From Lepidodermella squamata (taxonomy: Eukaryota > Animalia > Gastrotricha): a stretch of 64,000 nucleotides of DNA. The notes under the pieces are model-generated. The model saw nothing but the letters and a program-made list of their open reading frames with translations. It was not told the origin of the DNA and did not search any database. A program made the position numbers and the translations under genes. The DNA lies in contig JBLDXI010000009.1 of assembly GCA_047495785.1 (NCBI GenBank), forward strand, positions 1,178,001 through 1,242,000, read 5' to 3'. Shown in pieces: positions 1 to 54,009 of this stretch (position 1 is its first letter; each line of letters starts with the position of its first letter).

Positions 1-1354
1 CGGCTCGCCGTCTTGTCCCAAACAAAATCTCGTGCCTTTTATGACGACCATGTGAGCGGGAAGGTTAACACCCTGAGCCAAAGTGGTAGTAGAAACTGAA
101 GGCAAATACTTGGGTCAAAATTCAAGTGATTACAAAGCGAACTTACAAAGTGCTTTTATTTTCATGCCTCTAAAAAGCTCCTCGATAGTATTCCTTTCCT
201 TCTGGTTCAGTCCGGCATGGTGGAATGCTACGCCTCGCTCGACAACGCTTGCCAAAGTCGGATTTTCGGTCAGGGAATCGGAGGCTTCCTTCAAGTCTCT
301 TCTATCGGACTCGGAAATCGCGTACGGCTGATGGTCGGCAAAATACTTGGCAGTTTCTTCGGTCGACTTTCGGGACATGCAAAAGACCAATCCTGGCTTA
401 CCAGCGGAATATTGCTGCAAAACGCAGTTTGGTATCAAGAGACTTTTAGTTCGTGTTACCTTGTCTTACCTTGAAAATATCGGGCAGTCTACAGGTCAGA
501 ACTCTGTCGAAGTCACGGTCACTGTTAGAGATCGAAAAACCAATCACGTGTTTTTCAAGTTTCACCGGTCGAAAGGAATCATCGAAAAAGTATGACAGGC
601 TGTTTGGACCCAGCCATTCGTTGATATCAGTGACATTCTTGATCGTCGCCGATACGGCAACGATTCTCATGGGGAATTTTGAAGTATTTTGGAAGCTGAA
701 ATTATAGAAATTCAAACATAGAATAGTCATTTCGATTGAATGACTAACAATTTGATACGCGTTAGCAGCGCCTCCAGAGTCGCACCTCGAGATGAATCGC
801 CGATATTGTGGGCTTCGTCCACGAGGAACAACGTCGTTCATCAAAGAGCGATAGTTGCGGAAAATGGAATCAAGTTTTTCCGTGGTGCAGCAGATTACGT
901 CGTTTTTCTTTAGGTCAGCATATACTTTGCCCTTGTGGTCACCGGTGATCAGTTCCACCTTAAAGCCGCACAGCTGGCCTTTTCGCTGCCAATCGATAAA
1001 TTTCTCCGACGATAGAGTTTTAAGAGGAGCCACTGAAATGAAGAGTAGGTAACATTTGCTTATTACAAGCGAAGAGCTTACTGTAAAAAACGGACGGCTT
1101 GGGGCGATGGGGGTTCATGAGTGCTCGGATCATCGCTATCTCGAGCAGCGTGGTTTTACCGCACGATGTTGGTGCGCTGATCACGATATTTTTGTTCGAA
1201 CCGATCAGCTGACAATTTGTGTTGCAGTATATGATGATAAAATAGACCGGGTTCAACTCACGTCTTTCAGCACGATTTTTTGGAGCTGATGGAAATTCTT
1301 AAACTCAAACATCCGCGCGAATTCTGGCGGTATTTCGGTGCTGGATGAAGCCAT
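1..1354 (-). CDS. HFM1: HFM1/Mer3-like Ski2-family meiotic DNA helicase, copy A (5' part, continues beyond window; apparent frameshift at ~832)
   Basis: Inferred exons 1354-1262, 1208-1082, 1032-749, 695-470, 414-147, 95-<1 with GT-AG introns. Motifs: Walker A SAPTSCGKT, MAPLKTL, TTEKLDS, LFLVDEAH (831-808, in a shifted frame), AVSAT, FRPVKL, LVFCMSRK, GVAFHHAGL, STTTLAQGVNLPAHMVVIKGT. It could be a pseudogene, a null allele or an assembly error. Confidence 0.85.
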
Positions 1355-1652
1355 CAGGTACTGAATGTGTAAAAACGCCCTATTGCCAAGTTCTGATTAT
1401 CGTCAAAAATGGTAAAAATGTTATAGTTCTCTAAATTGAAGGAAAATGTTAAAAAAAGCAATTAGCATCTCGATGCCAAAGTGGCTATAGCAAGGAAAAT
1501 TAACGCAAGCATAACAATAAAATATTAACGAAATCGAGAGATATTACATCGTGGATTATCTAGATTATAGCCAAACTGTGAGAGATTTTGTCAACAGTTT
1601 CGCGGGGTCATATGGAGGTTACCAAGGAGGCATCAAGCAAAATCTACCACAG

Positions 1653-4053
1653 TTATAAAAAACCCTCAGGTAATTTAGATAGCAAAGATTCGTCGTCTTC
1701 GGAATCCTCGAAGGTTTCAGTACTTCCGACTTCTTTTGTGACCGTGAAAACGATGTCGTCGAGGCATGGTATTCGAGCCAATTTAGCGACAAACGACTCC
1801 TCATCTTCCGATTCGAAATCAAAATTGCGCTTGGCGGCTGCGTTCTTCATCGGAGTGGAGGTCTGAATAATCACATTTACCGAGTAATTCGGGCTAATAG
1901 TAGCTTCAACATCAACTCCAATTATTTCCAAGCTGATTAGTTGAGCTTTTATCGTCTCCGATCTTCCTAGACATTTTTCTTGGAAAGTCCACGAACCATT
2001 CCAGCTATTCAACATTTTTTCATCTCCGAACTCGAGAAATCTCAGGGCTGTCGAACTTTCAGATCCGCCTTAGAAAAAATGTAAAATAATGAAGAAAAAA
2101 TTGCCAACGACTTACTTAACACGAGAATCAGCTGGTGATTATCAGGCAACATCGAGCCATTTCGAACTTGCTGGGCATTGCGGATGCGGACGCAAACCTT
2201 TATCAAGGCGAAATCCGCTGCATAAGGAGGTAGCTGTTCAAGCTTTAGTTCGTACTCGGGCACACAGCGAGCCTTGCTAATTAAATTGAAAGCGAAGGTC
2301 CCCTTGCGGTTGCAAGCGATCTGTATGTCCATTGGCCTCGCTGAAGCCAGTAGCCTCCAGGATACGAAACCTGCGTTAGCTAAGCGTCGAGAGTAGTGGA
2401 CCCCGATTCCTTCAAGCTGTCGAGAATAGTAAGGGCTGTCGTGCCACAAGTGCTTGTGCATGATCTTGAAGAAAATGCAAACGGCGCATATTACATTGGT
2501 CTGTTTTTCCGAAAGAAGCTGCACAATTTCAAGCAGGCACCTGGCTATCCTTGCCCCGATTACTAACATTTTCTTTATTTCAGCGGCCAGCGACTTGTCG
2601 AGCTCTTCGCCAGATAGCACAGCTTGGAGTCCAATAAAAACCGTTGTCTCTAAAAGGTTCAATGTGACTGGTAGTTCGAACCGATTGAAATGCTCGAAAT
2701 TTCTCAGGTATTCAGGATCAATTTCCGCCACGGCCAATAAGGACAGCTCAGCGCTATCAGCCAGGAGCTGAAAGAGATCGCGAAGTTCAAGTTTGGGATT
2801 AGCCGATGCTTCCATGACACTTTTCATTGTCTTGTAGGAAATGGGGAGCGTAGCCATGACGTGACCAATCGGGGTTGATGAAACGAAATCGTCCCCATCT
2901 GGGCTGAATTTGATGAAATCAGCCGATGCCAAATTTTCCAAAGATCTATCGACTTGGTTGCAGGCAAATCGATCTGCGACTTCGGACAATGACTCGCCAT
3001 GCGACGCGAAGGCGAATTCGCTACTTGATGACGATTCAGATGACTCGGTTTGGTCGATATAATGATTGGTATTTTTGAACAGCCGCGTATAAAGAAACGA
3101 ACTTCTCACAAAGTTATAGCCTTCCTTGATAGATTTGATGTTTCCAAGGTCTATCTCTGCCATCAAAACATCTGCGCAAAAATATGAATTCGAAACAGTT
3201 CTATGATACGATAAACGAACCATTCATAAAGCGAAAAAGGCATGATTCAACCGGTTGTAACAAATCGGAACGATGAAGATCATCGATCGAGTAAGATCGG
3301 CAGTCTGGGCCAAGCCACTGGCTGAAATCAGATACGTTTGCGATAGCAGCCGAAGAACCGGCGACTATGCGAATTCGAGGCCCCGAAGATTTTCCCGACC
3401 TTAGAGGAATATTTAAAATTTCAACTGCAAAGGGTAAAATCAGTCACTCACAAATTTATTCGAGTTAGCATAGCTTCCAAGGTTGGTCCCGTTAAGGGCT
3501 CTGCGACCGCCTCAAGCCCATCAACCACAACAAGCGATATTTTCTGCATCAGGGATCGTCGATCTCGAAGAAGCGTGTCTGCTGTTTCGATGGTGCAGCA
3601 GACGATATCGCTTCTCTTCAATTCACCATATGGAGGAACCATGTAATCCGTTGTGACTTTCGTCACAGTAAAATCGCATCTCTTGCCCTTCTCAGCCAAA
3701 TCAAGATATTTATCGGATGATTCTGCTTGCCAGGAGGAAACTGAGAAAAATGATTACTCAAATGTTCGTAAAATAAAAAATCAGAGCTTTACTATAGATA
3801 ACTGAAGGCTTGGGCCGCTGCTGTCTTGATAAAGCTCGAACTAAAGCTAGGTCAAATAGCGTATGTATGCAAGATGCTGATGCGCTAATAACGATGTTTT
3901 GATCCGATTCAATCAACTGCAGGTAAAATATCAAGTATGAATTATCAACTATCAATTTTTGGAACCCACTTCTTTGGATACGATCTTCTGAAATTCGGAA
4001 AACTTTGTATTAGAGAACATCGGTGCGAAATTTCGGGGGATATCTGGCTGCAT
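1653..4053 (-). CDS. HFM1/Mer3-like paralog, copy B: inactive helicase (degenerate RecA1 + winged helix + Sec63/Ig-like + acidic tail; RecA2 absent)
   Basis: Inferred exons 4053-3970, 3916-3793, 3740-3452, 3399-3221, 3171-2116, 2068-1653 join into one open frame. The first three intron positions match copy A. WH/Sec63 motifs: PVESCL..DVLMAEI, FVRSSFLYTRLFKNTNHY, TPIGHVMA, LWHDSPYYSRQLEGIG, LISLEIIGVDV. Walker A reads SASASCIHT and Walker B reads VVVDGLE. Confidence 0.85.
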
Positions 4054-4370
4054 CTCCGCTAGTCAGCTTTCAGCTTCTCTTTGTCAATCAAATGTTAAAC
4101 TGGACTACGCGAAAAAGAAGCAAGGGAGTTACGGGTAAACAACAGTTTATTACACGATTCCTTCCGTCGCATTTATCAAACCGGAACCATTAGCATGCCA
4201 TCAATACCATCATCATTATGTTAGCGCACCATTACAAACCACTGCAGAGTTTATGACATGGATCATCACTGAACAAGGAAAGAAAATTTTACGAGCATCA
4301 GACCTCACAAGGGTTTATTTTAACATGATTATCATGAATCAAATTCAGTTCGCTTCGAAAGCTGCTTTCA

Positions 4371-21000: not shown

Positions 21001-24000
21001 TCAACTCGGCAGAATTGATGAAAAAGTAACAGCGTAAGGATTAAAAACCACCTGAAAAAAAGAAATCGACTATTAAGTATCGAGTTTTTTTTGGCAAGCA
21101 AACCTTGTTCAGTAGATCAGCGATTTTCGAAGCGGTGTGATCGGGCTGAATTCCGATAACGCTCCAGCAAAGCACGTCGGTAACTTTGACGACTCCCTGG
21201 CGGCACTTGCACATGTAGACTTCGTAAGTAATCATGTCATCAGGATCGAAAGCTGCATTCAACAAAACAGCTCCTGAAAAATCGCATGCTATAAACAATA
21301 ACAAATTCTCATTCACCTTCAGTCACGAACTAAAATAAATCTATAAATCATAACGCGGGATGATTGCGGCAATGGTAACTTTGGACACTTTTTTCTCGGA
21401 CTTGAATAGCTTTGCAACGACGTGGGATAAAATTACGGGCTTTAGTGCATAACGTCCCCGTCTTCCGAGCTTTCGATAGCTGTAAGGTCGGTCATTGGGT
21501 TAATAATCTTTTTGGAGAAATGTTATAGCAGTGCGATTTCGGATGGCGTATCTAGTATCTCTGCCGTATCTCCCTATAAAGGAAGATCCGCTCAGGACAG
21601 CATTTGGCATGTGAATTCCCATACCGTTAATCTCACATAATTCGCAAAGAAAATGCAAAAACCGGACGATTGCTTTTTCCAGCGCGTTCAGATGACCAAT
21701 CGGGTAATTTTGTACTGTATAAAAATGCGGCGGTGCAAAACGTATGGAAAACAGATGGTGCGCAAACTGTTCACATTTTTTCCAATTCGGACCGAAAAGT
21801 CAACAAAAATGTAAAAACACACAACGCTATTGCATTAGCAAATGATCGTCCGAAATTACCCTCTAATTGTCCCCAGTTAGCTATACATTTTTGAACCCAG
21901 GTAAAAATACAAAAATTTCAAAATTTGCAGTAAATTCAAGAATCACTATGTTCCCATTTGGTGAAAATCAGAATTCAGAAATTTAGAAGCAAGGGAAGTC
22001 CGAAAAGCATGTTTTGTCCATGACACCCCTCTGCACCGTTTCTTTTTGAAAAAATTAAAGAATGAACCTGTGTCGTTCGAAACTCGGTTAAGGCCAGCAC
22101 TCATAGTTTCATTGCCACGAACGCCAAATTTGTTGAGATCGGAGATTGTCAGAACGGTGGGAATCGGCTTCGACAGCTTCTGGTAGAATTTCTCGATGAA
22201 AGATGGCGTAGATTCGGCATTTGTGGTCGATTGCGAATAACATTCGCCGAAGAAAATTTCATCCGTGCAATGGACGCAACGGCCAGACATCGCTTTAACA
22301 GGCGGTTTAGGGAAAACGACTTTAACAGTCGGAATGCGATCAACAGGTTTCACTGGAACAGGCGAGGTGCCGTTCAAAGTCGAAGCAGATTCGGACCGAT
22401 CGCAGCAAGCACTGTCGAATAAATCCGGAGAAGTCGAGCTGAGACGAGTTTGAGGTGATGTCCGAGTTGAAGCTGGTGAAATCGTGCCACGCTCATATAG
22501 AGGTTCGACCTTTGCCGATACCGGAGACATGATCGAGGCAACTTTGTTGGCAACGGCAGCGACTGGTCTTGCCATTTGAGCGCCAAAAACCTTGGAAATA
22601 TTTGTTGGCGTGAAGGTAAATTTTGAAGCTGGCGGGGCTGGCAGGGGCGGTTGCATTGCCGCCTGCTTAGGTCCAGGTTGAGCAGCTGGTTTCGAAGCTA
22701 CCGGTGTGAGACTTCTCGCTTGGCTAGCCTCAGCCTCGAACTTCTCGCTCTGCATGAAGTTGATAAGGTTCGTGCGAAAATGGGGGAAATTAGTAAAAGC
22801 AGCACGTCTCTCGCGAACCCATTTACTGACTTTATCATTGCCCCGATAGTTTGGTTGGCAAAATCGCTCATCGCATAGAATTATGGCGCCCCAGTCTTTA
22901 CGATGACGTATGCAACGGCCTAGCGCCTGATTCAAAGCTCGAAAAGCTTGGCACTCATACCATTCACCGCCAGGCAGGATGTTTTTGTTCCGACAATGCC
23001 TAAAAATTGAAATCAAATCACGTGACAATGGTAGTATAAAATATTGTACATTTCATTGTACTGCCGTTTTTCTTTGACTTGGGGGTCCATCAAGGCTGGA
23101 TAGGGTATGCCAACAGCAATCACCGCTCTAGCGTAGTCATCCGCGAAATTCAAACCTTCGGAAACTTTTCCGCGGTAAACAGCGAGAAATAAAGCTCCAT
23201 TTGTGTTGCCTTCAACATTTCTGGCATTAGATGGCCCTTTACCGCGCTGAGACATAGGCGTAACGCCTTTGCGACGCGGCAAGCCCGGGTCGTCGAGTTT
23301 CCTCTTCTTATTCGGCTGCGTTAGCTTATTCCCGAAGAAGACCGGTTTTCGCTCACATTTGTAGTCATCTTCATCATCCATAGCATCAGCGTCGTCACTC
23401 AACACATCGTCATGATGGCCGGAATTCGGTTTCCCACAACTGGCGTAAAAATCTGCCAAGGTTTCTTCAAAGTGAGCTCCGCCACCGCTGGTTTCAATAA
23501 AAATATTTTTCGTACTAGCTATACGATCGTACATCCCGGTCGAACGCCAGCGTTCAACCATTTTTTCAATCAATCGATAACTGGTGAAAAATATGAGAAC
23601 ACCACCAGGGGTGACTGAACAGATCTCTTCCGTCAACTCGCCAATTCCATCTTGGAAATCAAAAGTTTCCGTGTTCTTGTAAACAGCTTGAAGAGGTTTG
23701 TTCCGCGGTGAAACCCCGATACAGGCAGCAAAAACCTGGCTTTTCCCAATAACATGTCCAGCTTCGAATTGAATGGGGAAATTAGTGCCAAGTTCCGATT
23801 GAAAAGTGGTCATCGGACTCAATGTCCCTGAAGCTAGAACAATCGTTCGAGCTTGTTCGACGATTTGTTGGAAAATAACAGCCGGGTTGAGACACCAAAA
23901 GTGTAAGGCGTAATTAATCTCGTGGCGGAAATTACCACCACCCCGGCGGCCGCGTCCGACGAATTCTCCGGGCCGCGATTGTGGTTGGTCTTCAACAGTA

Positions 24001-26290
24001 ACCTGCTGTTTAGTTACCAGCATTCTAAAATCCTCAGCGTGTTTATTCCCGTCTTTTTGAATCATTTGGCAAACGCCAATTAGGTGCTCCAAAATAACTT
24101 CAACTTTCACGGAGATTGCTGGTTCAGAGTTTGTCGACGTCGTTTTACCGCCGCGTTGCGTTTTTTCGATGACCTCCTCGGATTGCCGAGCGGCTCGCAA
24201 GTTGTCTAAATCTTGCGACAACTGAGTGCATGTTTCGTGATCGAGGCCGAGCCGAGTCTCAAGGTGGGCAACCAGATTCGCCCCACCCAGAATAACACTA
24301 GTCAGGACGTGACCTCCAACCTCGGTATCTAAATGCAGATGTTATGATAAACTAAATAGTTTGAAGCACAGAAATTTTACCGATAATTTTATTTCCCTCA
24401 TCTCGAATGTAGTTTTTCAGGCGTTCAAGCGTAGCCAACATCAGTGGGGTTTCCCAACCCTTATTCAAATCTTTCTCAGCTTCTTCCATTTCTCGAGAGG
24501 TAATTTGAATCGAAGCTGCTTCCCGGCACGCATCTTCGATGTTATGCGCTTCATCGAAAATCACGATATCCTTTTCGAGTTTGACGTTCATCTAAAAAAT
24601 ATCCATACAATTCGAGTCATTTCCAAAAATAAGCCGGTAGACCGTTATCACCTCACTTTCACGATTTTTATAAATTCTGCAACCTTCCTCAAATCTTGCA
24701 AAGAGAAATTTGGTAGATTTAAAATCAGCTAAGATTTTAGTTCTTATTTATTCAATACAGTGACAAGGGATGGTTTCGAAAAAAATCCGAAAAATCCATT
24801 GATATTACGCGGAATACCGCACGACGGGTTTTTCGGGCTTCCTTGGGTGAAGACTGGATAAAGAACGGCTTTTAGAGTGTTCAATTGTGTAAAAATGCCA
24901 AAATTCTCAGCATATAATTAAAAACTCAGCAAATTTTAAGACACCTATTAACCCTATATTTCACCTCTAATCTTGCGAAAAATCTTGAAAATTGAAGTAA
25001 CTAAATAATTACCGTTTTCCGAATAAAAGGGTCGATGAGGTAGCTATAAGGGCAGAATACTATGTCAGCCTTATTCGCCAGTTCTCGAGCAGCGTAGTAT
25101 GGGCAAGCGCCTTTCATGCGGGAAGCATCAACAAACTGCTCGAGGTCCCAAGCCTGGGTCAGTCCAGCTGAGTAAATCTTCTCAGAACCGTCCATGGAGG
25201 GGACCTTGTGTTTAAAAGAGCAGGCACCTCCGCCAGGCTGCAAATTGAACCCCAATTATAAACAAGACACAAAAATTCTGGACGGAAGATAACCTGCTGA
25301 AGTAGTTTTCTGCACTCATCGTTCTTGTTTCCACTTCTAACGACAACTTCATTGATGCACGTGTGTTCACGGCTCGCGAGGATGGACATGCTATTGCGAT
25401 GCCGAATGAGTATAGGTTCAAATTACGAACCAAAACTTACTTGGCATGCCGATATGCAGTTTTCGCAAGTTCGGAAGTCAACTGAGCTATCTGCTTGTGA
25501 GTTCTGGTACCGTAATAAATCTTCGGAACGCTGTAAATCAATCAATAATCAACATCAGCTACCCACTGTCGAGTTATAAATTACTAATATTTTTGGGAAT
25601 CGTTAACCATCTTCGGAACAGCAAGGTGGCAACCGCACTCGCACGCAAACATTTCTTCGTCAATGATTGTTTTGTTTTCCAAATCCTTTTTCTTCGGTTT
25701 CATCATAATCGAAAAATTAAATTTCAACGCCTTAGTTAATATTAACCTGGGATAGCGGCCTTACTGGTTTCTTGGCAATAGGCTTGAAATCTTCGTCGTC
25801 ATCATCGCCCCCAATAACCATTACGTCATCATCTTCACTCAAAACTTCTTCTTTCGTCAGATTTTTCACCGCGCAATTGCACGAATCGCAATCTTTTGAA
25901 CCATCATTTACCGACTCCAGCATTTTCTGCATATTTTCCGTGTCATGTTTCCGCTTTTTCACTGTTTGAATACACTGATTTTAAAGATTTTTCACAAGCA
26001 AATTTCACACCATGTTCTTCTTGTTGCCAGGCCAAGGCGGCGCATAGTAACGCCAGGGTTTTACCGCTTCCAGTCGGCGACTCCAGCAAGCAATTCTGTG
26101 AGCTTCTTATACCTTGGATTATCTACAGCAACCATTAATACATGAGCGCAACATCAGTACACATGTAACCAACTTTTGACATTAACACAGTTTGAGCCGG
26201 ATAGGGCTTATAAGGAAACCGTACTTTCACACCACCGATAACCATATCGTGCGAAACTGTGTATTTATCTTGTTCTTCATCGTTATTCAT
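21001..26290 (-). CDS. BRIP1: FANCJ/BRIP1 (dog-1) Fe-S DEAH DNA helicase
   Basis: Multi-exon gene starting MNNDEEQ...[15 protein letters not shown]. Motifs: [22 protein letters not shown]; FANCJ-type [14 protein letters not shown]; four Fe-S cysteines (REHTC, DEC, ACSF, ACPYY); [10 protein letters not shown]; [10 protein letters not shown]; LASGTLSP; [13 protein letters not shown]; [22 protein letters not shown]. Two last exons ~21272-21104 and ~21051-21001. Confidence 0.93.
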
Positions 26291-49159: not shown

Positions 49160-52100
49160 TCAACCGGAGAGAATTTGCTCATAAACATTAGTCAGAGCAT
49201 GAAAGTCCTCAGCATCCGACACCGGCAAGACCGTAGGTGGTACTGTTGTGACGAACCGACGGAACCGGGTAATGCAAGATCCTAGTTCTGGTTTGAGCTG
49301 GTCATTGAAAGCTACAGTTTGAGCAGCAATATTATTCGCCTGTTGCGCGAACGGGATATTCGCCCCGGTTGCACCAGATCGAATAAGTTGCAGATGAATA
49401 ACGGCTTGGGAAACGATCAGCTGAAGCAGCGAATGAAGTAGTGCAGCAATAATTCCATGATTAATTGCCTTGAACGCGACAAAAATTAATTAAATTGAAT
49501 ATTATAGCAGAAAATAAGTATACCCCATGCTTTGAGGAGGATTCGTGACCGCCGTCACTTGGTCTCCGCATTCGGCGAACCGTGGCGTGAAAACACGCAA
49601 ACAAAAAGCCGAAAGTGAGGCTATTAGGAATCCGCGACCTCGACCCAGCGCCGCCTATCTTAGGGCTAGAAGTACCGAGAGATACCAAGGAGAAATCTGC
49701 TTCAACCAAAGGGATGACCTGGCGCCCTCCTTGGAACTGTAATGTCGTAAGATCAACAATTTTATCGAATTATTTACATCTCAACTTACAATATCGCCAT
49801 GAACAATGTGAGTCAGAGTTGGGGAGACTCGAAGCAAGGCATTTGCAGCACATGAACACAGTTGAATGACATTGTCCTCAGTGGTTTTGCAATCAGCCGC
49901 AGTTGAAAGCGTCGAATGCGAATAGTTGTTCAGCAGAACGAAAGCGCTCATGAACATGACGCAGATTATCTCTGTCAAACTGAGATCCGAAGAAGTTTGA
50001 TACGCGGCTTGGTCTTGCACCGATAAGCGAGACGCGATTCGTTCGATCAATCGCGTCCAGGCCGAGCAGATCGCGAAGTGAAGGGCGTCAGATGACGGCG
50101 TCAAATGGAAAGCCAGCTTAGCAAAACGAGCCTTGTAAACCGCCAGAAATGTGCAAGTCGTCTCGGTGTTGACGAAATAATTTCGATCTCCATCGCTATG
50201 CATCAGCAAAGCAGTGATTATATCGATTACGATAACTGTGGCTTTTCTCAGAATCGCATCCGCGGTTGGCTGGGAACCGGTTAACGCCACCTCAAGGAAC
50301 GCGTGGTTGTAAAATGCGTTTGACAGGGACGACAAAACCCGTTTCACAGCAAAAATCTGCGATCTGTTTTCGCTGAACTCTGACGAGGCGTTAAGAGTAT
50401 GGACTACATTGAGCAAAAACGTCAACGCGTCAATATTCACTTCGCCAATATTGTTGTCTTGAATAGTCTTTGCAGTACATTCGACTAGTTTGCAGATGAA
50501 AATTTCGTTCCGAAGGATAACCGATGTCATGCCAACGCTATTGCTTAGCAACAACGCGTTTATCACAGATAGAGCAGCGGAGAAAAATTCCGAGGCAATG
50601 CGACTGTCCGATTCAGTAGCCATAATTTGGGTGATGACGTCAGCCGCTAGCGTTGGAAAACTTTCCTGGCAGCTAAATGCGATTGTTTGGTCATTAATGG
50701 CGTGTTTCAGCAGCTCGGCTAGTAAGGTCAGGGACAAAATGCCAGGTTCGTCAAACCTGATAGGTATTTCGTCACCAAATGCGTGTACTGACATCACCAT
50801 TCGACTTATCTCGGTACATTTGGCGAAAACCGACGGAGGGGTTGCGTTCAGTAAGGCGGCTGTTGACTTCATTGGCACGTTACGCATTCGAGAATTCGTT
50901 GAAAAGGCAGATTTCGCCCAGTTGCGAACCATAAGGACAATCGCTCGCAGAAACGAAGGTAGCAAAACGCGACTCAGTGCGACAGTCCTCTTCAGAGCAA
51001 TTGAATCTTGAAGCGATTGCAGATCTGTCAAGATATCAATACAGACCGAAGCACAGCTATCGATAATTTCCAACTGCTGGCGAGGTTTGACAAGCTGATT
51101 CGGTAAATTCGAAATAGATAGTGTATCTAAGAATGTTTGAATCGTCGCAGCTGCCGTTGAACAAGTTTGAGATAGCGGGAAGAATTCGCCTTCATCATCG
51201 TTCAACAATAGGAAGTCAAAAACCGATTCGAGTTTAGACGTTACCAGCCCATTTTCGAACATTGGCGTCAATTTTTGCACCAACGTAGCGTTCAAACCTA
51301 CAGAGCTACCAGGTCGGCAAAAATTGAACATTTCCAATGACAGAATATCCATCACTGTCAGGAGACAAGCGATTTGAGATTTCCTGTATGTTCCTTCCTT
51401 AGCAACATCTGCTTCCAGTGGGTAGACGATGGAAGCCCAGAAATTTTGCTGGCCACTTTCTTCAACCAACTGCTTCGCAAAATTCTGGTGTCGACCGAAT
51501 CGCCAAGCTGCTGCAATAATTTTCAAGGAGGCCAGGTATAGCGAAGGCAAGGATTGATACAACTCGAATCGAGCAATTATCGACATCACCAGGGGTCGAA
51601 TTTTAGGTGCTAAATCGCCGAAGAAGGCGGGTTGGTATTGCATAGTTGCCTCGACAAGACCCATTGTCGATTGGATGAGCATGAGACGAAAGTTCGCACT
51701 AGTTTCACTTGTCACGTACTTCTCCTCCTCAGAAATCGTTTCGACGATTACAGATTGAAACTGTTTTCGTTCATTCAACGACAAAAGACCGTTCAGGGAA
51801 AGACTATGGCCTAAAACTGTGACGACGAGAGCTACCAAATCGAAACAAAGCCGGCGGTTGTTTTCATTCAAACTCAACAGCCGATTTGGCGGAAACGAAG
51901 AATTTGTCAGATAGACAACAGCTCGAGCTAAATCAGCCGATCCTACGGCAATTGTTGATCCAACATCCCAATTATCAGATCTTACGCTGATGAATCGATA
52001 GAGACGAAGCATACACGAGAGGAATGCTGAAATCAGCGATTGTAGCGACGGTTGGACCAAATTTTGCTGATGCGTGTAAGCATTGGGTGGTTGACTGTTG

Positions 52101-54009
52101 CTATCGGCAATCGATAAAATGAAATCCACGACTTTGGAAGGCAGCGAATTAGACACGTGATTTAAAAGCGGGTCAATAATGAATAAATTGTTGAAAGCCT
52201 GTAAATTACTAAGCTTATTCGAGGCGAAATTATGCACGTCAAAAATTAAGGCGGATAAAGCGTAGATATTCCGCAAATGATCGACTCGCTTCTTCAAATA
52301 CGTGAATCGCCAAGTCGCTACATTCGCTAACGAAGTATGAAGGAACGAATCGAGAAAGGCGAGCAGGTTTTTGCGAATCGAATCGCCGTACATCCACTCG
52401 AAATATTTCGTCTCGAGAAACGCGGACATCAGAGTGCATATTGCGGCTGTGATCTGAAAATCAGCGTACCGGCATTCGTAGGTTGAAAGCAGTTCGCCAT
52501 ATAGACCGCCTAACAAAACAGGCGCCCAATAGTCGTCCATTATTACGGCAACTTCTTCCGGGCAACGGATAGCGAGAGCGCCGAAGAAATTCATTACACC
52601 CGAGATTACGGAGACAACTTGGCGGACAAGTTGGGGAGACTCGCGAACAGCATTCAAACATGGAGCTAATCGAGAAAAAGGTCCCAAAATCGAAAACGTG
52701 GTCTCGAACCATGCGGAAGATTCCAAATTTTTAGCAAGCCCATAAAACAATCGGGCTATTTCAGCTAAAAGATCCAACACCGTCCCATCATCTAGCTGAA
52801 CTGCGTCGCTGGCTACTGACGAGGTAACGGCGGCAAACCAGTCGAAGGCGTTATAGTTGTGCTAAAAATCGCAATGAGAGATGAATTAATAGTAAAAATT
52901 ATTGAACTAACTGTAAATAGAACTCGCTGAATAGCTCCATTTTCGGGCCAATTTGAAAGCACTAAACCTTTGGTGCCTTGGGGTAGGACCAAATGAACCC
53001 CACCTGGAGGTTTCCACGGCTGCAACAAAGTCACTGTAGCGCAGTCATTAGGATGGCTAAGTTGCATAACGCTTGTGACAGGAAAGTTCGAAGCTAATAT
53101 AATATAGCAAAAATTAGGAAAATAACCGTCAAATAATGAAACGTACGTAGCTGAACGGTAAAAACCGCCATGTTCGAAAACGCATTTCGAATGACTGTGG
53201 CGCATTCTTTAGACACCGAAGCACAAGCCGAGAATAGTTTCGTGATCGGCAGTGGGTACAGAGGGAAAAGCTGATAGGCTGAAGTAAAAATGAACTCCAA
53301 TCCGCCTACACTTTCCAAGTTATCGTGTATTTCCTCAATATCAGCCAGTTGTGTTGATTTCAGGAAGTATTCTGAACTTTTCGGATACCGCACAACTTCG
53401 GCAGTCAATGTAGTTAGTTGAGCGATAGTTTCTTCCGACATGTAATCTTCCGGAACTTTTGAAAGCCATAAATCGATTGCGTGCAATAATTCACATGAAA
53501 TCGCATCGAGGCACGGGATATCAAAACCGGCCTCTCGAAATAGCAACATGTGAGTGGCCATGTTTCCGGGGCAACCACTGTTGAGGAATTTCAGGAAACC
53601 ATCCGCCCAAATCGCGTTATCATTGACTGGTAAAAGTTGGTGATAGGTTTCACACATGTTCAAAACCGCCAGGTCGCTTTGGTCGACAACGTTACGCCAG
53701 TTGTGGCGCTGGGAAGGAGCGCGGCTTCGAGTACTCAGCCATTCAAGGCGATGATACCGAAAATTAACTGCAGTTGACAAATAAATCACCCAACGCTGCA
53801 GCAACGGGTCATTTACGGTGAATGCCGATCGACCAAGGCCCTCCCCTGAACAACAAATATGATTCACTAGAAAAATTTGATCGAAAATGCAAACCAAGAA
53901 CGTCCTCGACAGTTTTCGCACCTCCGACCAAATCTATGCTGGATGAAAATAGAAACTTCCGCAATTTAGCGGCCAGCTCAGCCAACTCAGAGCCAGCAGG
54001 AGTTGCCAT
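49160..54009 (-). CDS. NUP188: Nucleoporin Nup188-like
   Basis: About 1500-aa helical solenoid over several exons, including ORFs 53094-53921 and 49781-52780. Motifs: SH3-like insertion LVLPQGTKGLV...YNAFDWF, QLFPLYPLPITKLFSA, YECRYADFQIT, QQNFWASIVYPL, C-terminal LLQLIVSQA...LKPELGS. ATG 54009, stop 49160. Confidence 0.8.

Follow-up and report, generated by a model that had tools for sequence, protein, structure and literature searches.

Mer3/HFM1 is a Ski2-like SF2 DNA helicase that serves the ZMM crossover pathway; it is required for most crossovers, and its loss leads to infertility in humans. How the job of this protein is divided between unwinding and binding is still being settled in vitro; on the binding side, the patch of the Mer3 Ig-like domain that contacts Mlh2/PMS1 is marked in yeast by R893. 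Binding of Mlh2/PMS1 by the Ig-like domain has been described (PMC5215242), and the cross-links of yeast Mer3 to its partners MutLbeta and Top3-Rmi1 cluster on RecA1, the helix-loop-helix and the Ig-like domain (PMC10201424). The laboratory allele Mer3 K167A, in which a single residue is changed and both RecA domains remain, does not hydrolyse ATP but still binds partners, and in vitro it protects D-loops from Sgs1-Top3-Rmi1 equally to the wild type (PMC10201424).

Three further systems provide a frame for comparison. The C-terminal cassette of Brr2 and the inactive cassette of ASCC3 are Ski2-like, carry a Sec63 module, have lost unwinding and act through contacts; both RecA domains are kept in them, and each shares its polypeptide with an active cassette. 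The Sec63 protein, a J-domain membrane protein and subunit of the ER translocon, possesses a Sec63/Brl unit without a helicase motor. Utp25, a DEAD-box relative active in ribosome assembly with both RecA-like domains kept, has the helicase fold but no catalytic motifs and has been retained for a structural role (PMC9539457).

Here we analyze two neighbouring HFM1-type genes, copy A and copy B, in a window of 64,000 nucleotides from the gastrotrich Lepidodermella squamata (contig JBLDXI010000009.1, positions 1,178,001 to 1,242,000). An earlier note on this DNA had read copy B as an intact but catalytically dead paralogue lying in tandem with its parent, copy A.

Results

Copy B occupies positions 1653-4053 of the minus strand and is predicted to consist of six exons (4053-3970, 3916-3793, 3740-3452, 3399-3221, 3171-2116 and 2068-1653) with 715 codons and a stop codon, the spliced translation being free of internal stops. 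All five introns are of the GT..AG type and measure 47-53 nt; two of the five acceptors read TAAG, and intron 5 offers another in-frame CAG acceptor at +21 nt. The earlier reading of an intact frame of about 710 codons with intact splice sites thus holds, and the gene shows none of the stops, frameshifts or broken splice sites by which a pseudogene is recognized. Contigs assembled from short reads cross the region without joints or loose ends; among sequencing runs, a search yielded two sets of DNA contigs, one of them containing this stretch, and no RNA.

Alignment with copy A identifies residues 1-211 of B (3264-4053, minus strand) as a RecA1 remnant in which motifs Q, I, Ia, Ib, II and III are degenerate. 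The altered stretches read SASASCIHT (3886-3860), ISSWQAES (3793-3718), TIETADT (3594-3574), DGLE (3522-3511) and GSSAA (3359-3345), so that the required intact motifs Q, I (GxGKT), II (DExH) and III (SAT) are not found in this domain; the destruction of the ATPase motifs, claimed earlier for SASASCIHT, DGLE and the motif III position, is evident. From the end of the remnant the reading frame passes directly into the winged helix at 3284-3237 of the minus strand, where DDLHRSD (3284-3264) is followed within exon 4 by LLQPVESCL (3263-3237), and RecA2 with motifs IV-VI is absent. The in-frame jump seen in the earlier note is reproduced in the alignments of full-length HFM1 proteins, which match B in two blocks (residues 4-216 and 214-640) and skip about 190 subject residues corresponding to RecA2. 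Among 88 database proteins having both RecA1 and a winged helix, B alone lacks RecA2. Because the residues of motifs I, II and III are lost and RecA2 is missing, the prediction that B can be neither an ATPase nor a translocase, being unable to hydrolyse ATP or to move on DNA, is supported.

Residues 212-639 (1884-3263, minus strand) comprise a winged helix, the Sec63 helical bundle and a helix-loop-helix, and by homology a putative Ig-like domain; the winged helix followed by the Sec63 unit of helical bundle and helix-loop-helix is the accessory-domain feature of HFM1/Mer3. Pfam searches, for which separate exons served as queries and which therefore cover only part of Sec63, returned Sec63 (E 7.9e-15), a weak DEAD match (E 4e-4) and SNRNP200_wHTH (E 0.0018), the latter two under the cut-off, and no match to Helicase_C in the B exons, the pattern that had been expected of Sec63 with a weak DEAD match and no Helicase_C. 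AlphaFold, likewise queried by exon, models exon 5 alone as winged helix plus Sec63 with a pLDDT of 85.5 and a pTM of 0.81, values obtained with an alignment of homologues that biases the model toward the family fold. The top Foldseek match of this model is Brr2 (E 4e-10, TM 0.68). Homology extends to about residue 650 and includes the conserved LIS..VG.D strand, the Ig-like domain being split by intron 5. Two features are private to B: a Ser/Glu-rich loop within this region (3046-3017) and a C-terminal tail (1656-1883, minus strand) with the acidic clusters FDFESEDEESF (1823-1791) and FEDSEDDES (1712-1686), for which Pfam gave no family match.

Copy A (1-1354, minus strand; exons 1354-1262, 1208-1082, 1032-749, 695-470, 414-147 and 95-1) was identified by its motifs and HFM1 similarity as an HFM1-type RecA1 with the start of RecA2. 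The motifs APTSCGKT, DEAH, SAT, HHAGL and TLAQGVNLPAH are present, and identity to named HFM1 proteins is 35-41% (E as low as 5e-78). The gene leaves the window at the window's start, within RecA2, so the full RecA2 ascribed to it earlier is seen only in part, and its Sec63 portion lies outside. Nor can A stand as the intact parent gene: three-frame translation and bookkeeping of the frame place a frameshift in exon 3 at 829-838 (minus strand), where a leftover base, G832, falls between ..RSLMND and LFLVDEAH. The frame changes between GAC (835-833) and TTG (831-829), directly ahead of LFLVDEAH, and the upstream frame runs into a stop in exon 4. Copy A thereby carries the disabling lesion of a pseudogene. 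A 1055-nt contig from the short-read DNA run X1, with a depth of about 50, is identical to positions 158-1212 of the window without differences or gaps, so that the short-read assembly supports the window at the frameshift, although X1 may share its sample with the genome assembly and would then not be independent. Depth in this run, whose contig set excludes conserved-gene contigs that resemble human ones, is about 50 across A and, for each of two versions, 38-52 across B; it reaches 76 in places where these merge into one. The values are ambiguous as to the zygosity of the frameshift.

The two genes are read from the same strand and separated by a spacer of 298 nt from the stop codon of B to the start codon of A (1355-1652). 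Each has its own ATG, that of A aligning with the start of B, and an acceptor-like CAG lies 6 nt upstream of the ATG of A. A third HFM1 copy was not found in the window.

The RecA1 domains of A and B share 45% of 207 aligned residues (E 4e-52), while B is 26-30% identical to other HFM1 proteins and scores about half the normal bits per residue against them in both halves, pointing to weak conservation throughout. Introns 1-3 lie at the same positions and in the same phase in both copies, as had been claimed, and introns 1 and 3 are missing from the HFM1 gene of the nearest relative. In an exhaustive search with exon 5 of B, the best 150 of 482 matches were all single-cassette proteins of HFM1 type, those with names being HFM1, and no two-cassette protein was among them; Brr2 and ASCC3 chains reached only E 1e-5. 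A maximum likelihood tree joined A and B to the exclusion of the relative's HFM1 (supports 100/99 and 99/93) with branch lengths of 0.39 for A, 2.32 for B, six times as long, and 1.25 for the A+B stem. An AU test did not quite reject the tree in which A joins the relative's gene and B stands outside (p 0.056). These results support B as an HFM1-lineage paralogue with A, rather than any cassette of Brr2 or ASCC3, as its sister, a grouping anticipated in the earlier note; as Brr2 and ASCC3 are absent from the tree, the call of lineage rests on the ranking of matches together with the sister relation of A and B. Judged from the sequences, the A/B split is an old tandem duplication within the lineage, old since synonymous sites between the two copies are saturated.

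No B-like protein was found among 1.84 billion representative proteins in the exhaustive search, the top match to the Sec63 part being only 30% identical. On the contigs of the nearest relative there is a single, ordinary HFM1, and no B adjoins it. This gene lies on a different scaffold from the syntenic one, along which 30 kb were walked and on which collinearity with the window ends at about 30 kb, short of the B/A locus.

Substitution patterns support, at the level of the gene sequence, that B evolved under purifying selection. Identity between A and B is 0.605, 0.729 and 0.357 at the three codon positions, dN is 0.41-0.44, and dS is saturated (NG86 and YN00 undefined). The coding sequence of B has no stop in its real frame and 21-46 in the other five. 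The two versions of B in run X1, of which the second may represent an allele or come from a different strain or gene copy, were compared in 40 of 109 rows of differences; among those listed, 17 synonymous stand against 12 non-synonymous coding differences (pN/pS 0.21-0.28, binomial p 3e-5 to 7e-4 for the 29 coding differences listed), and all indels fall in introns or outside genes. The ratio is not near 1, in keeping with the selection proposed earlier. Of the columns conserved in the family, B keeps 25/38 in the Sec63 helical part, 3/4 in the Ig-like domain and 31/67 in RecA1; for the highly conserved RecA1 columns the count is 46/67 in A and 57/67 in the nearest relative.

Discussion

We consider copy B, with a probability of roughly 55%, to be a retained protein-coding, non-catalytic HFM1/Mer3 paralogue, a pseudo-helicase, which descends from an old tandem duplication and works by binding. 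B has lost the residues that bind and hydrolyse ATP in motifs I, II and III as well as the whole of RecA2; what it retains is a remnant shaped like RecA1, together with the winged helix, the Sec63 bundle with the helix-loop-helix, the Ig-like domain and the acidic tail. We infer that such a protein acts by binding and not by unwinding, possibly as a scaffold or competitor at recombination intermediates. The scaffold idea is plausible by analogy with yeast Mer3, since the RecA1, helix-loop-helix and Ig-like parts that B retains make up the partner-binding face there. Because A is frameshifted in the assembly, B may work independently of a functional A, at least in this haplotype, and the proposed partnership of the two copies is weakened. 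Of the earlier picture of a selected pseudo-helicase acting beside A, the purifying selection and the dead motor thus stand, and the partnership has lost ground.

Among described proteins, HFM1/Mer3 is closest to B: it provides the top matches of both halves, and its order of RecA1, winged helix, helical bundle, helix-loop-helix and Ig-like domain recurs in B, which differs in lacking RecA2 and in its degenerate motifs I, Ia, Ib, II and III. The fold of B matches Brr2 and its proposed mode of action would resemble that of the inactive Brr2 and ASCC3 cassettes, but B is a separate gene, has no RecA2 and derives from HFM1. The Sec63 protein shares the motorless Sec63/Brl unit but has neither a RecA1 remnant nor such a winged helix, and the sequence relatives of B are HFM1 and not the Sec63 protein. 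B would parallel K167A in failing to hydrolyse ATP; in contrast to that point mutant it is a natural gene minus a whole domain, its inactivity being read from sequence. With Utp25 it would share retention without catalysis. A literature search found no dead HFM1/Mer3 paralogue, which agrees with the view in the earlier note that no example had been described.

The most credible alternative, although an unlikely one, keeps B functional and selected but places its role apart from meiotic crossovers, for instance that of an adaptor for somatic DNA repair or for RNA binding with the Sec63 unit as its basis. Selection on B is compatible with such a role, ancestry being the sole tie of B to meiosis, and the long branch of B as well as the novelty of its loop and acidic tail would suit a changed function; set against this, B retains the domains with which Mer3 contacts its partners and sits 298 nt upstream of an HFM1 copy on the same strand. 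Distinctly unlikely, in our judgement, is that B is a relic whose function was recently lost or is going, in a strain where the whole HFM1 locus decays and ZMM-type crossovers are unneeded (e.g. under parthenogenesis). The frameshift of A and its reduced count of conserved RecA1 columns, the long A+B stem and two weak acceptors in B all fit such decay. The clear synonymous excess in B and the lack of coding indels among the differences listed do not, nor do its intact frame and all ten intact splice sites; given the numbers of stops in the other frames, a dead gene of this age, with dS saturated, would teem with stops.

Two further readings concern the locus as a whole. Joint expression of B and A, through a trans-spliced operon or a read-through fusion that yields a two-cassette protein like Brr2/ASCC3 with its first unit dead, would draw on the shared strand, the short spacer and the acceptor-like CAG ahead of A, but B has a stop codon, A has an ATG of its own that matches the start of B, and A is frameshifted; we regard this as highly improbable. 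That the absence of RecA2 in B or the frameshift of A is an artefact of assembly is barely credible, for the short-read k-mer contigs span the whole stretch without joints or loose ends and are exact over 158-1212, and the junction in B is in frame and inside an exon, even if the DNA run possibly came from the assembly's own sample and so is not independent.

As a retained pseudo-helicase, B would be a selected natural version of HFM1 with the binding parts only (RecA1 remnant, winged helix, Sec63 and Ig-like domain), and as such an evolutionary experiment on the question of unwinding versus binding, extending the short list of pseudo-helicases. A bolder form, which we hold to be doubtful, is that B represents a natural separation of function, having taken over the helicase-independent job of HFM1, be it the protection or marking of recombination intermediates or the recruitment of partners of the MutL or TOP3-RMI1 type, and left the motor copy A so dispensable that this lineage could lose it; if true, this would be the first case in which a motorless paralogue replaces or regulates the ZMM helicase from which it derives. 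The frameshift of A also raises a simple question, namely whether the ZMM pathway is still in use in this strain. Elsewhere in the window, a candidate frameshift in an RTEL1/FANCJ-like gene at 22-24 kb was rejected, as the gap of 53 nt between the matched parts fits an ordinary intron.

Gene structure and domain organization of copy B

The first 4.1 kb of the window carry, on the minus strand, two co-oriented HFM1/Mer3-type genes, the RecA2-less copy B and the motor-bearing, partial copy A, and tblastn found no third HFM1-type copy within the window. This genome is compact, its introns being about 50 nt long. Copy B reads from an ATG at 4053 to a stop at 1655-1653 as 715 stop-free codons over six exons predicted by spliced translation (4053-3970, 3916-3793, 3740-3452, 3399-3221, 3171-2116 and 2068-1653, minus strand). 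All five predicted introns, 47-53 nt long, are GT..AG, in agreement with the intact frame and splice sites described in the earlier note. Introns 3 and 5 have TAAG acceptors; a better-looking acceptor upstream in intron 3 was rejected as too close to the donor (27 nt), and intron 5 has an alternative in-frame CAG acceptor 21 nt further on.

Residues 1-211 of copy B match copy A with 45% identity across 207 residues (E 4e-52). As proposed from the sequence alone, the ATPase motifs are destroyed: relative to copy A, APTSCGKT has become A-SASCIHT (motif I), DEAH has become DGLE (motif II) and SAT has become SSA (motif III), and motifs Ia (MAPLKTLS to ISSWQAES) and Ib (TTEKLDS to TIETADT) are likewise changed. 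The proposed in-frame jump from RecA1 to the winged helix was found inside exon 4 (3284-3237), where DDLHRSD is joined directly to LLQPVESCL, the start of the winged helix. All full-length HFM1 proteins compared align with copy B in two segments (residues 4-216 and 214-640), between which about 190 HFM1 residues, RecA2, are skipped; among 88 fetched proteins with RecA1 and winged helix, RecA2 is absent only from copy B. Contigs of run X1, a public short-read DNA run, cover the stretch with no joints and no loose ends, so the gap is not an assembly join.

With the exons run separately, Pfam returned Sec63 (E 7.9e-15), SNRNP200-type winged helix and DEAD matches that were both sub-threshold, and no Helicase_C match in any exon; Sec63, a weak DEAD match and the lack of Helicase_C had been expected. 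The AlphaFold model of exon 5 (351 residues; pLDDT 85.5, pTM 0.81) has Brr2 WH-Sec63 units as its best solved matches (E 4e-10, TM 0.68); built on 23 homologues, with an alignment that favours the family fold, it indicates compatibility with the WH-Sec63 fold rather than proof of it.

Origin of copy B

An exhaustive HMMER search with copy B exon 5 against 1.84 billion representative proteins gave 482 hits, the best with only 30% identity (E 1.4e-28). Neither a self-match nor an orthologue of copy B was present among these proteins, and the missing self-match indicates that the proteins of this genome are absent from the collection. The named top matches were HFM1 of fish, octopus, mites, oyster and Capsaspora; the best 150 of the 482 matches included no two-cassette proteins, and Brr2 and ASCC3 chains reached only about E 1e-5 against copy B.

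The closest relative of the window genome that was found, R, comes from ENA metagenome ERZ23486787; the DnaJ sequences of R and the window share 79% identity, the next best matches lying below 60%. R encodes one ordinary HFM1, which has every motif as well as an N-terminal exon of its own, on a scaffold separate from those collinear with the window, and no B-like gene was found beside it on that scaffold. A maximum-likelihood tree of RecA1 only (67 rows) gave (R,(A,B)), with support of 100/99 for A+B and 99/93 for the trio, and branch lengths of 0.39 for A, 2.32 for B and 1.25 for the A+B stem. Constraining A to group with R, with B outside, cost 24.5 log-likelihood units, with a borderline AU p of 0.056. 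Introns 1, 2 and 3 are common to A and B in position, as had been noted, and also in phase; of these three the R gene has only intron 2. The tree, the shared introns and the search matches together indicate that copy B is a tandem duplicate that arose within this lineage. Search ranking and the sister relation of A and B place it apart from the inactive Brr2/ASCC3 cassettes, the grouping with copy A being the one expected in the earlier note.

The R HFM1 (scaffold L001, 8609-12553) begins with a 160-residue N-terminal exon that is absent in A and B, both of which start only a few residues ahead of the Q motif.

Selection on copy B

Over 210 aligned codons, dN between A and B is 0.41-0.44 and synonymous sites are saturated (dS of 2.1 by LWL85 and 7 by ML, undefined by NG86), which marks the duplication as old. 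Identity is 0.605, 0.729 and 0.357 at first, second and third codon positions, a pattern that would not be seen had copy B been defunct through most of the interval. The coding sequence contains 21-46 stops per 715 codons in the five other frames and none in the real one.

Run X1 contains two sequence versions across the copy B region, the second possibly an allele, strain or copy. Over window 1585-4300 the versions diverge by a few percent, locally by 13 differences in 46 nt (2552-2597), and one piece of 249 nt shows 18 differing positions against the window; over copy A the contigs show a single version. Among the differences listed (40 of 109 rows), 17 in copy B exons are synonymous and 12 non-synonymous, giving a pN/pS of 0.21-0.28 (binomial p 3e-5 to 7e-4 against neutrality); the ratio near 1 that the earlier note named as refuting was not seen between these versions. 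None of the listed indels is in an exon, their sites being intron 4 of B, intron 1 of A and upstream DNA; among the listed differences, intron 1 of copy B has 8 in 53 nt and exon 2 has 7 in 124 nt.

Of the columns shared by at least 80% of 35 HFM1 proteins, copy B keeps 25/38 in the Sec63 helical part, 3/4 in the Ig-like domain, 31/67 in RecA1 and 14/26 in the winged helix, compared with 31/38, 4/4, 57/67 and 23/26 in the R HFM1. In bits per residue against other HFM1, both halves of copy B show about half the normal conservation. To the question of whether copy B is selected, five lines of evidence from these comparisons answer yes.

Frameshift in copy A

Copy A, which starts at 1354 and leaves the window start inside RecA2, is broken in this assembly by a frameshift that the earlier note had not noticed. 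In exon 3, just before the DEAH box (829-838, minus strand), the frame reading ...EKLDSIFRNYRSLMND ends at 833 and that reading LFLVDEAHNIGDSSRGATLEALLTRIK begins at 831, so that a single base belongs to neither. Immediately upstream, TGATGA shuts the DEAH frame, no intron that would explain the frame change can be placed at the site, and translation read straight through stops in exon 4. A run X1 contig of 1055 nt (depth about 50) equals window 158-1212 with no differences and no gaps across the site, so that a separate short-read assembly agrees with the window, the run possibly being the assembly's own sample and hence no independent biological support. The frameshift aside, the visible exons have no other lesion and all motifs are present. 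Of the full RecA2 that the earlier note gave for copy A, only the start lies in the window.

The spacer from the B stop to the A start (1355-1652) measures 298 nt on the same strand, with an acceptor-like TTCAG 6 nt before the A ATG and no AATAAA; these features could fit operon-like co-transcription with trans-splicing.

Possible function of copy B

By descent copy B belongs to the HFM1/Mer3 family, but it fails two defining features of these helicases, the catalytic motifs and RecA2. It is incapable of normal ATP binding and hydrolysis and, without a second motor domain, is not a helicase; its predicted action is binding, not unwinding. It can be likened to a pseudo-helicase, a term applied to Utp25 (PMC9539457), and its likeness to the inactive Brr2 cassette goes no further than being a Sec63-bearing unit without activity. 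No paralogue of HFM1/Mer3 described as dead or motorless turned up in full-text literature searches.

Yeast Mer3 binds Mlh2 through its Ig-like domain, as mouse HFM1 does PMS1 (PMC5215242). Mlh1-Mlh2 and Top3-Rmi1 cross-link to one Mer3 face formed by RecA1, HLH and Ig-like parts, and ATPase-dead Mer3 K167A equals the wild type in protecting Dmc1 D-loops from Sgs1-Top3-Rmi1 (PMC10201424). Copy B retains the RecA1, HLH and Ig-like parts of this face and has lost RecA2; a retained partner face would explain why what is left of RecA1, though useless for catalysis, is still constrained. Both anatomy and selection signal are solid, the link to helicase-independent Mer3 functions is an attractive one, and a role as scaffold or competitor at recombination intermediates appears the best reading. 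The whole A/B locus may, alternatively, be under relaxed constraint, since copy A keeps only 46 of the 67 highly conserved RecA1 columns and the A+B stem branch is long. Within the scaffold or competitor reading, the proposed role as a partner of Mer3 is less secure because copy A is frameshifted on this haplotype, and copy B might act alone.

Other features of the window

Window 30000-62000 is collinear with R scaffolds L004, L005, L007 and L009 (ENA ERZ23486787 / ERZ23486764), collinearity ending near 30 kb. The shared genes are the DnaJA3/Tid1-like gene, a coronin-like WD40 gene, two kinase genes and an IP_trans gene, together with a 900-1000-residue ORF without family match. An XPD/RTEL1/FANCJ-type helicase gene (Pfam Helicase_C_2; 21946-24221, minus strand) appears as two overlapping ORFs; a frameshift was rejected there, as the matched parts lie 53 nt apart, which fits an ordinary intron. 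At 49781-52780 (minus strand), a 999-residue ORF with no Pfam match is conserved in R at 40-65% in tblastx segments.
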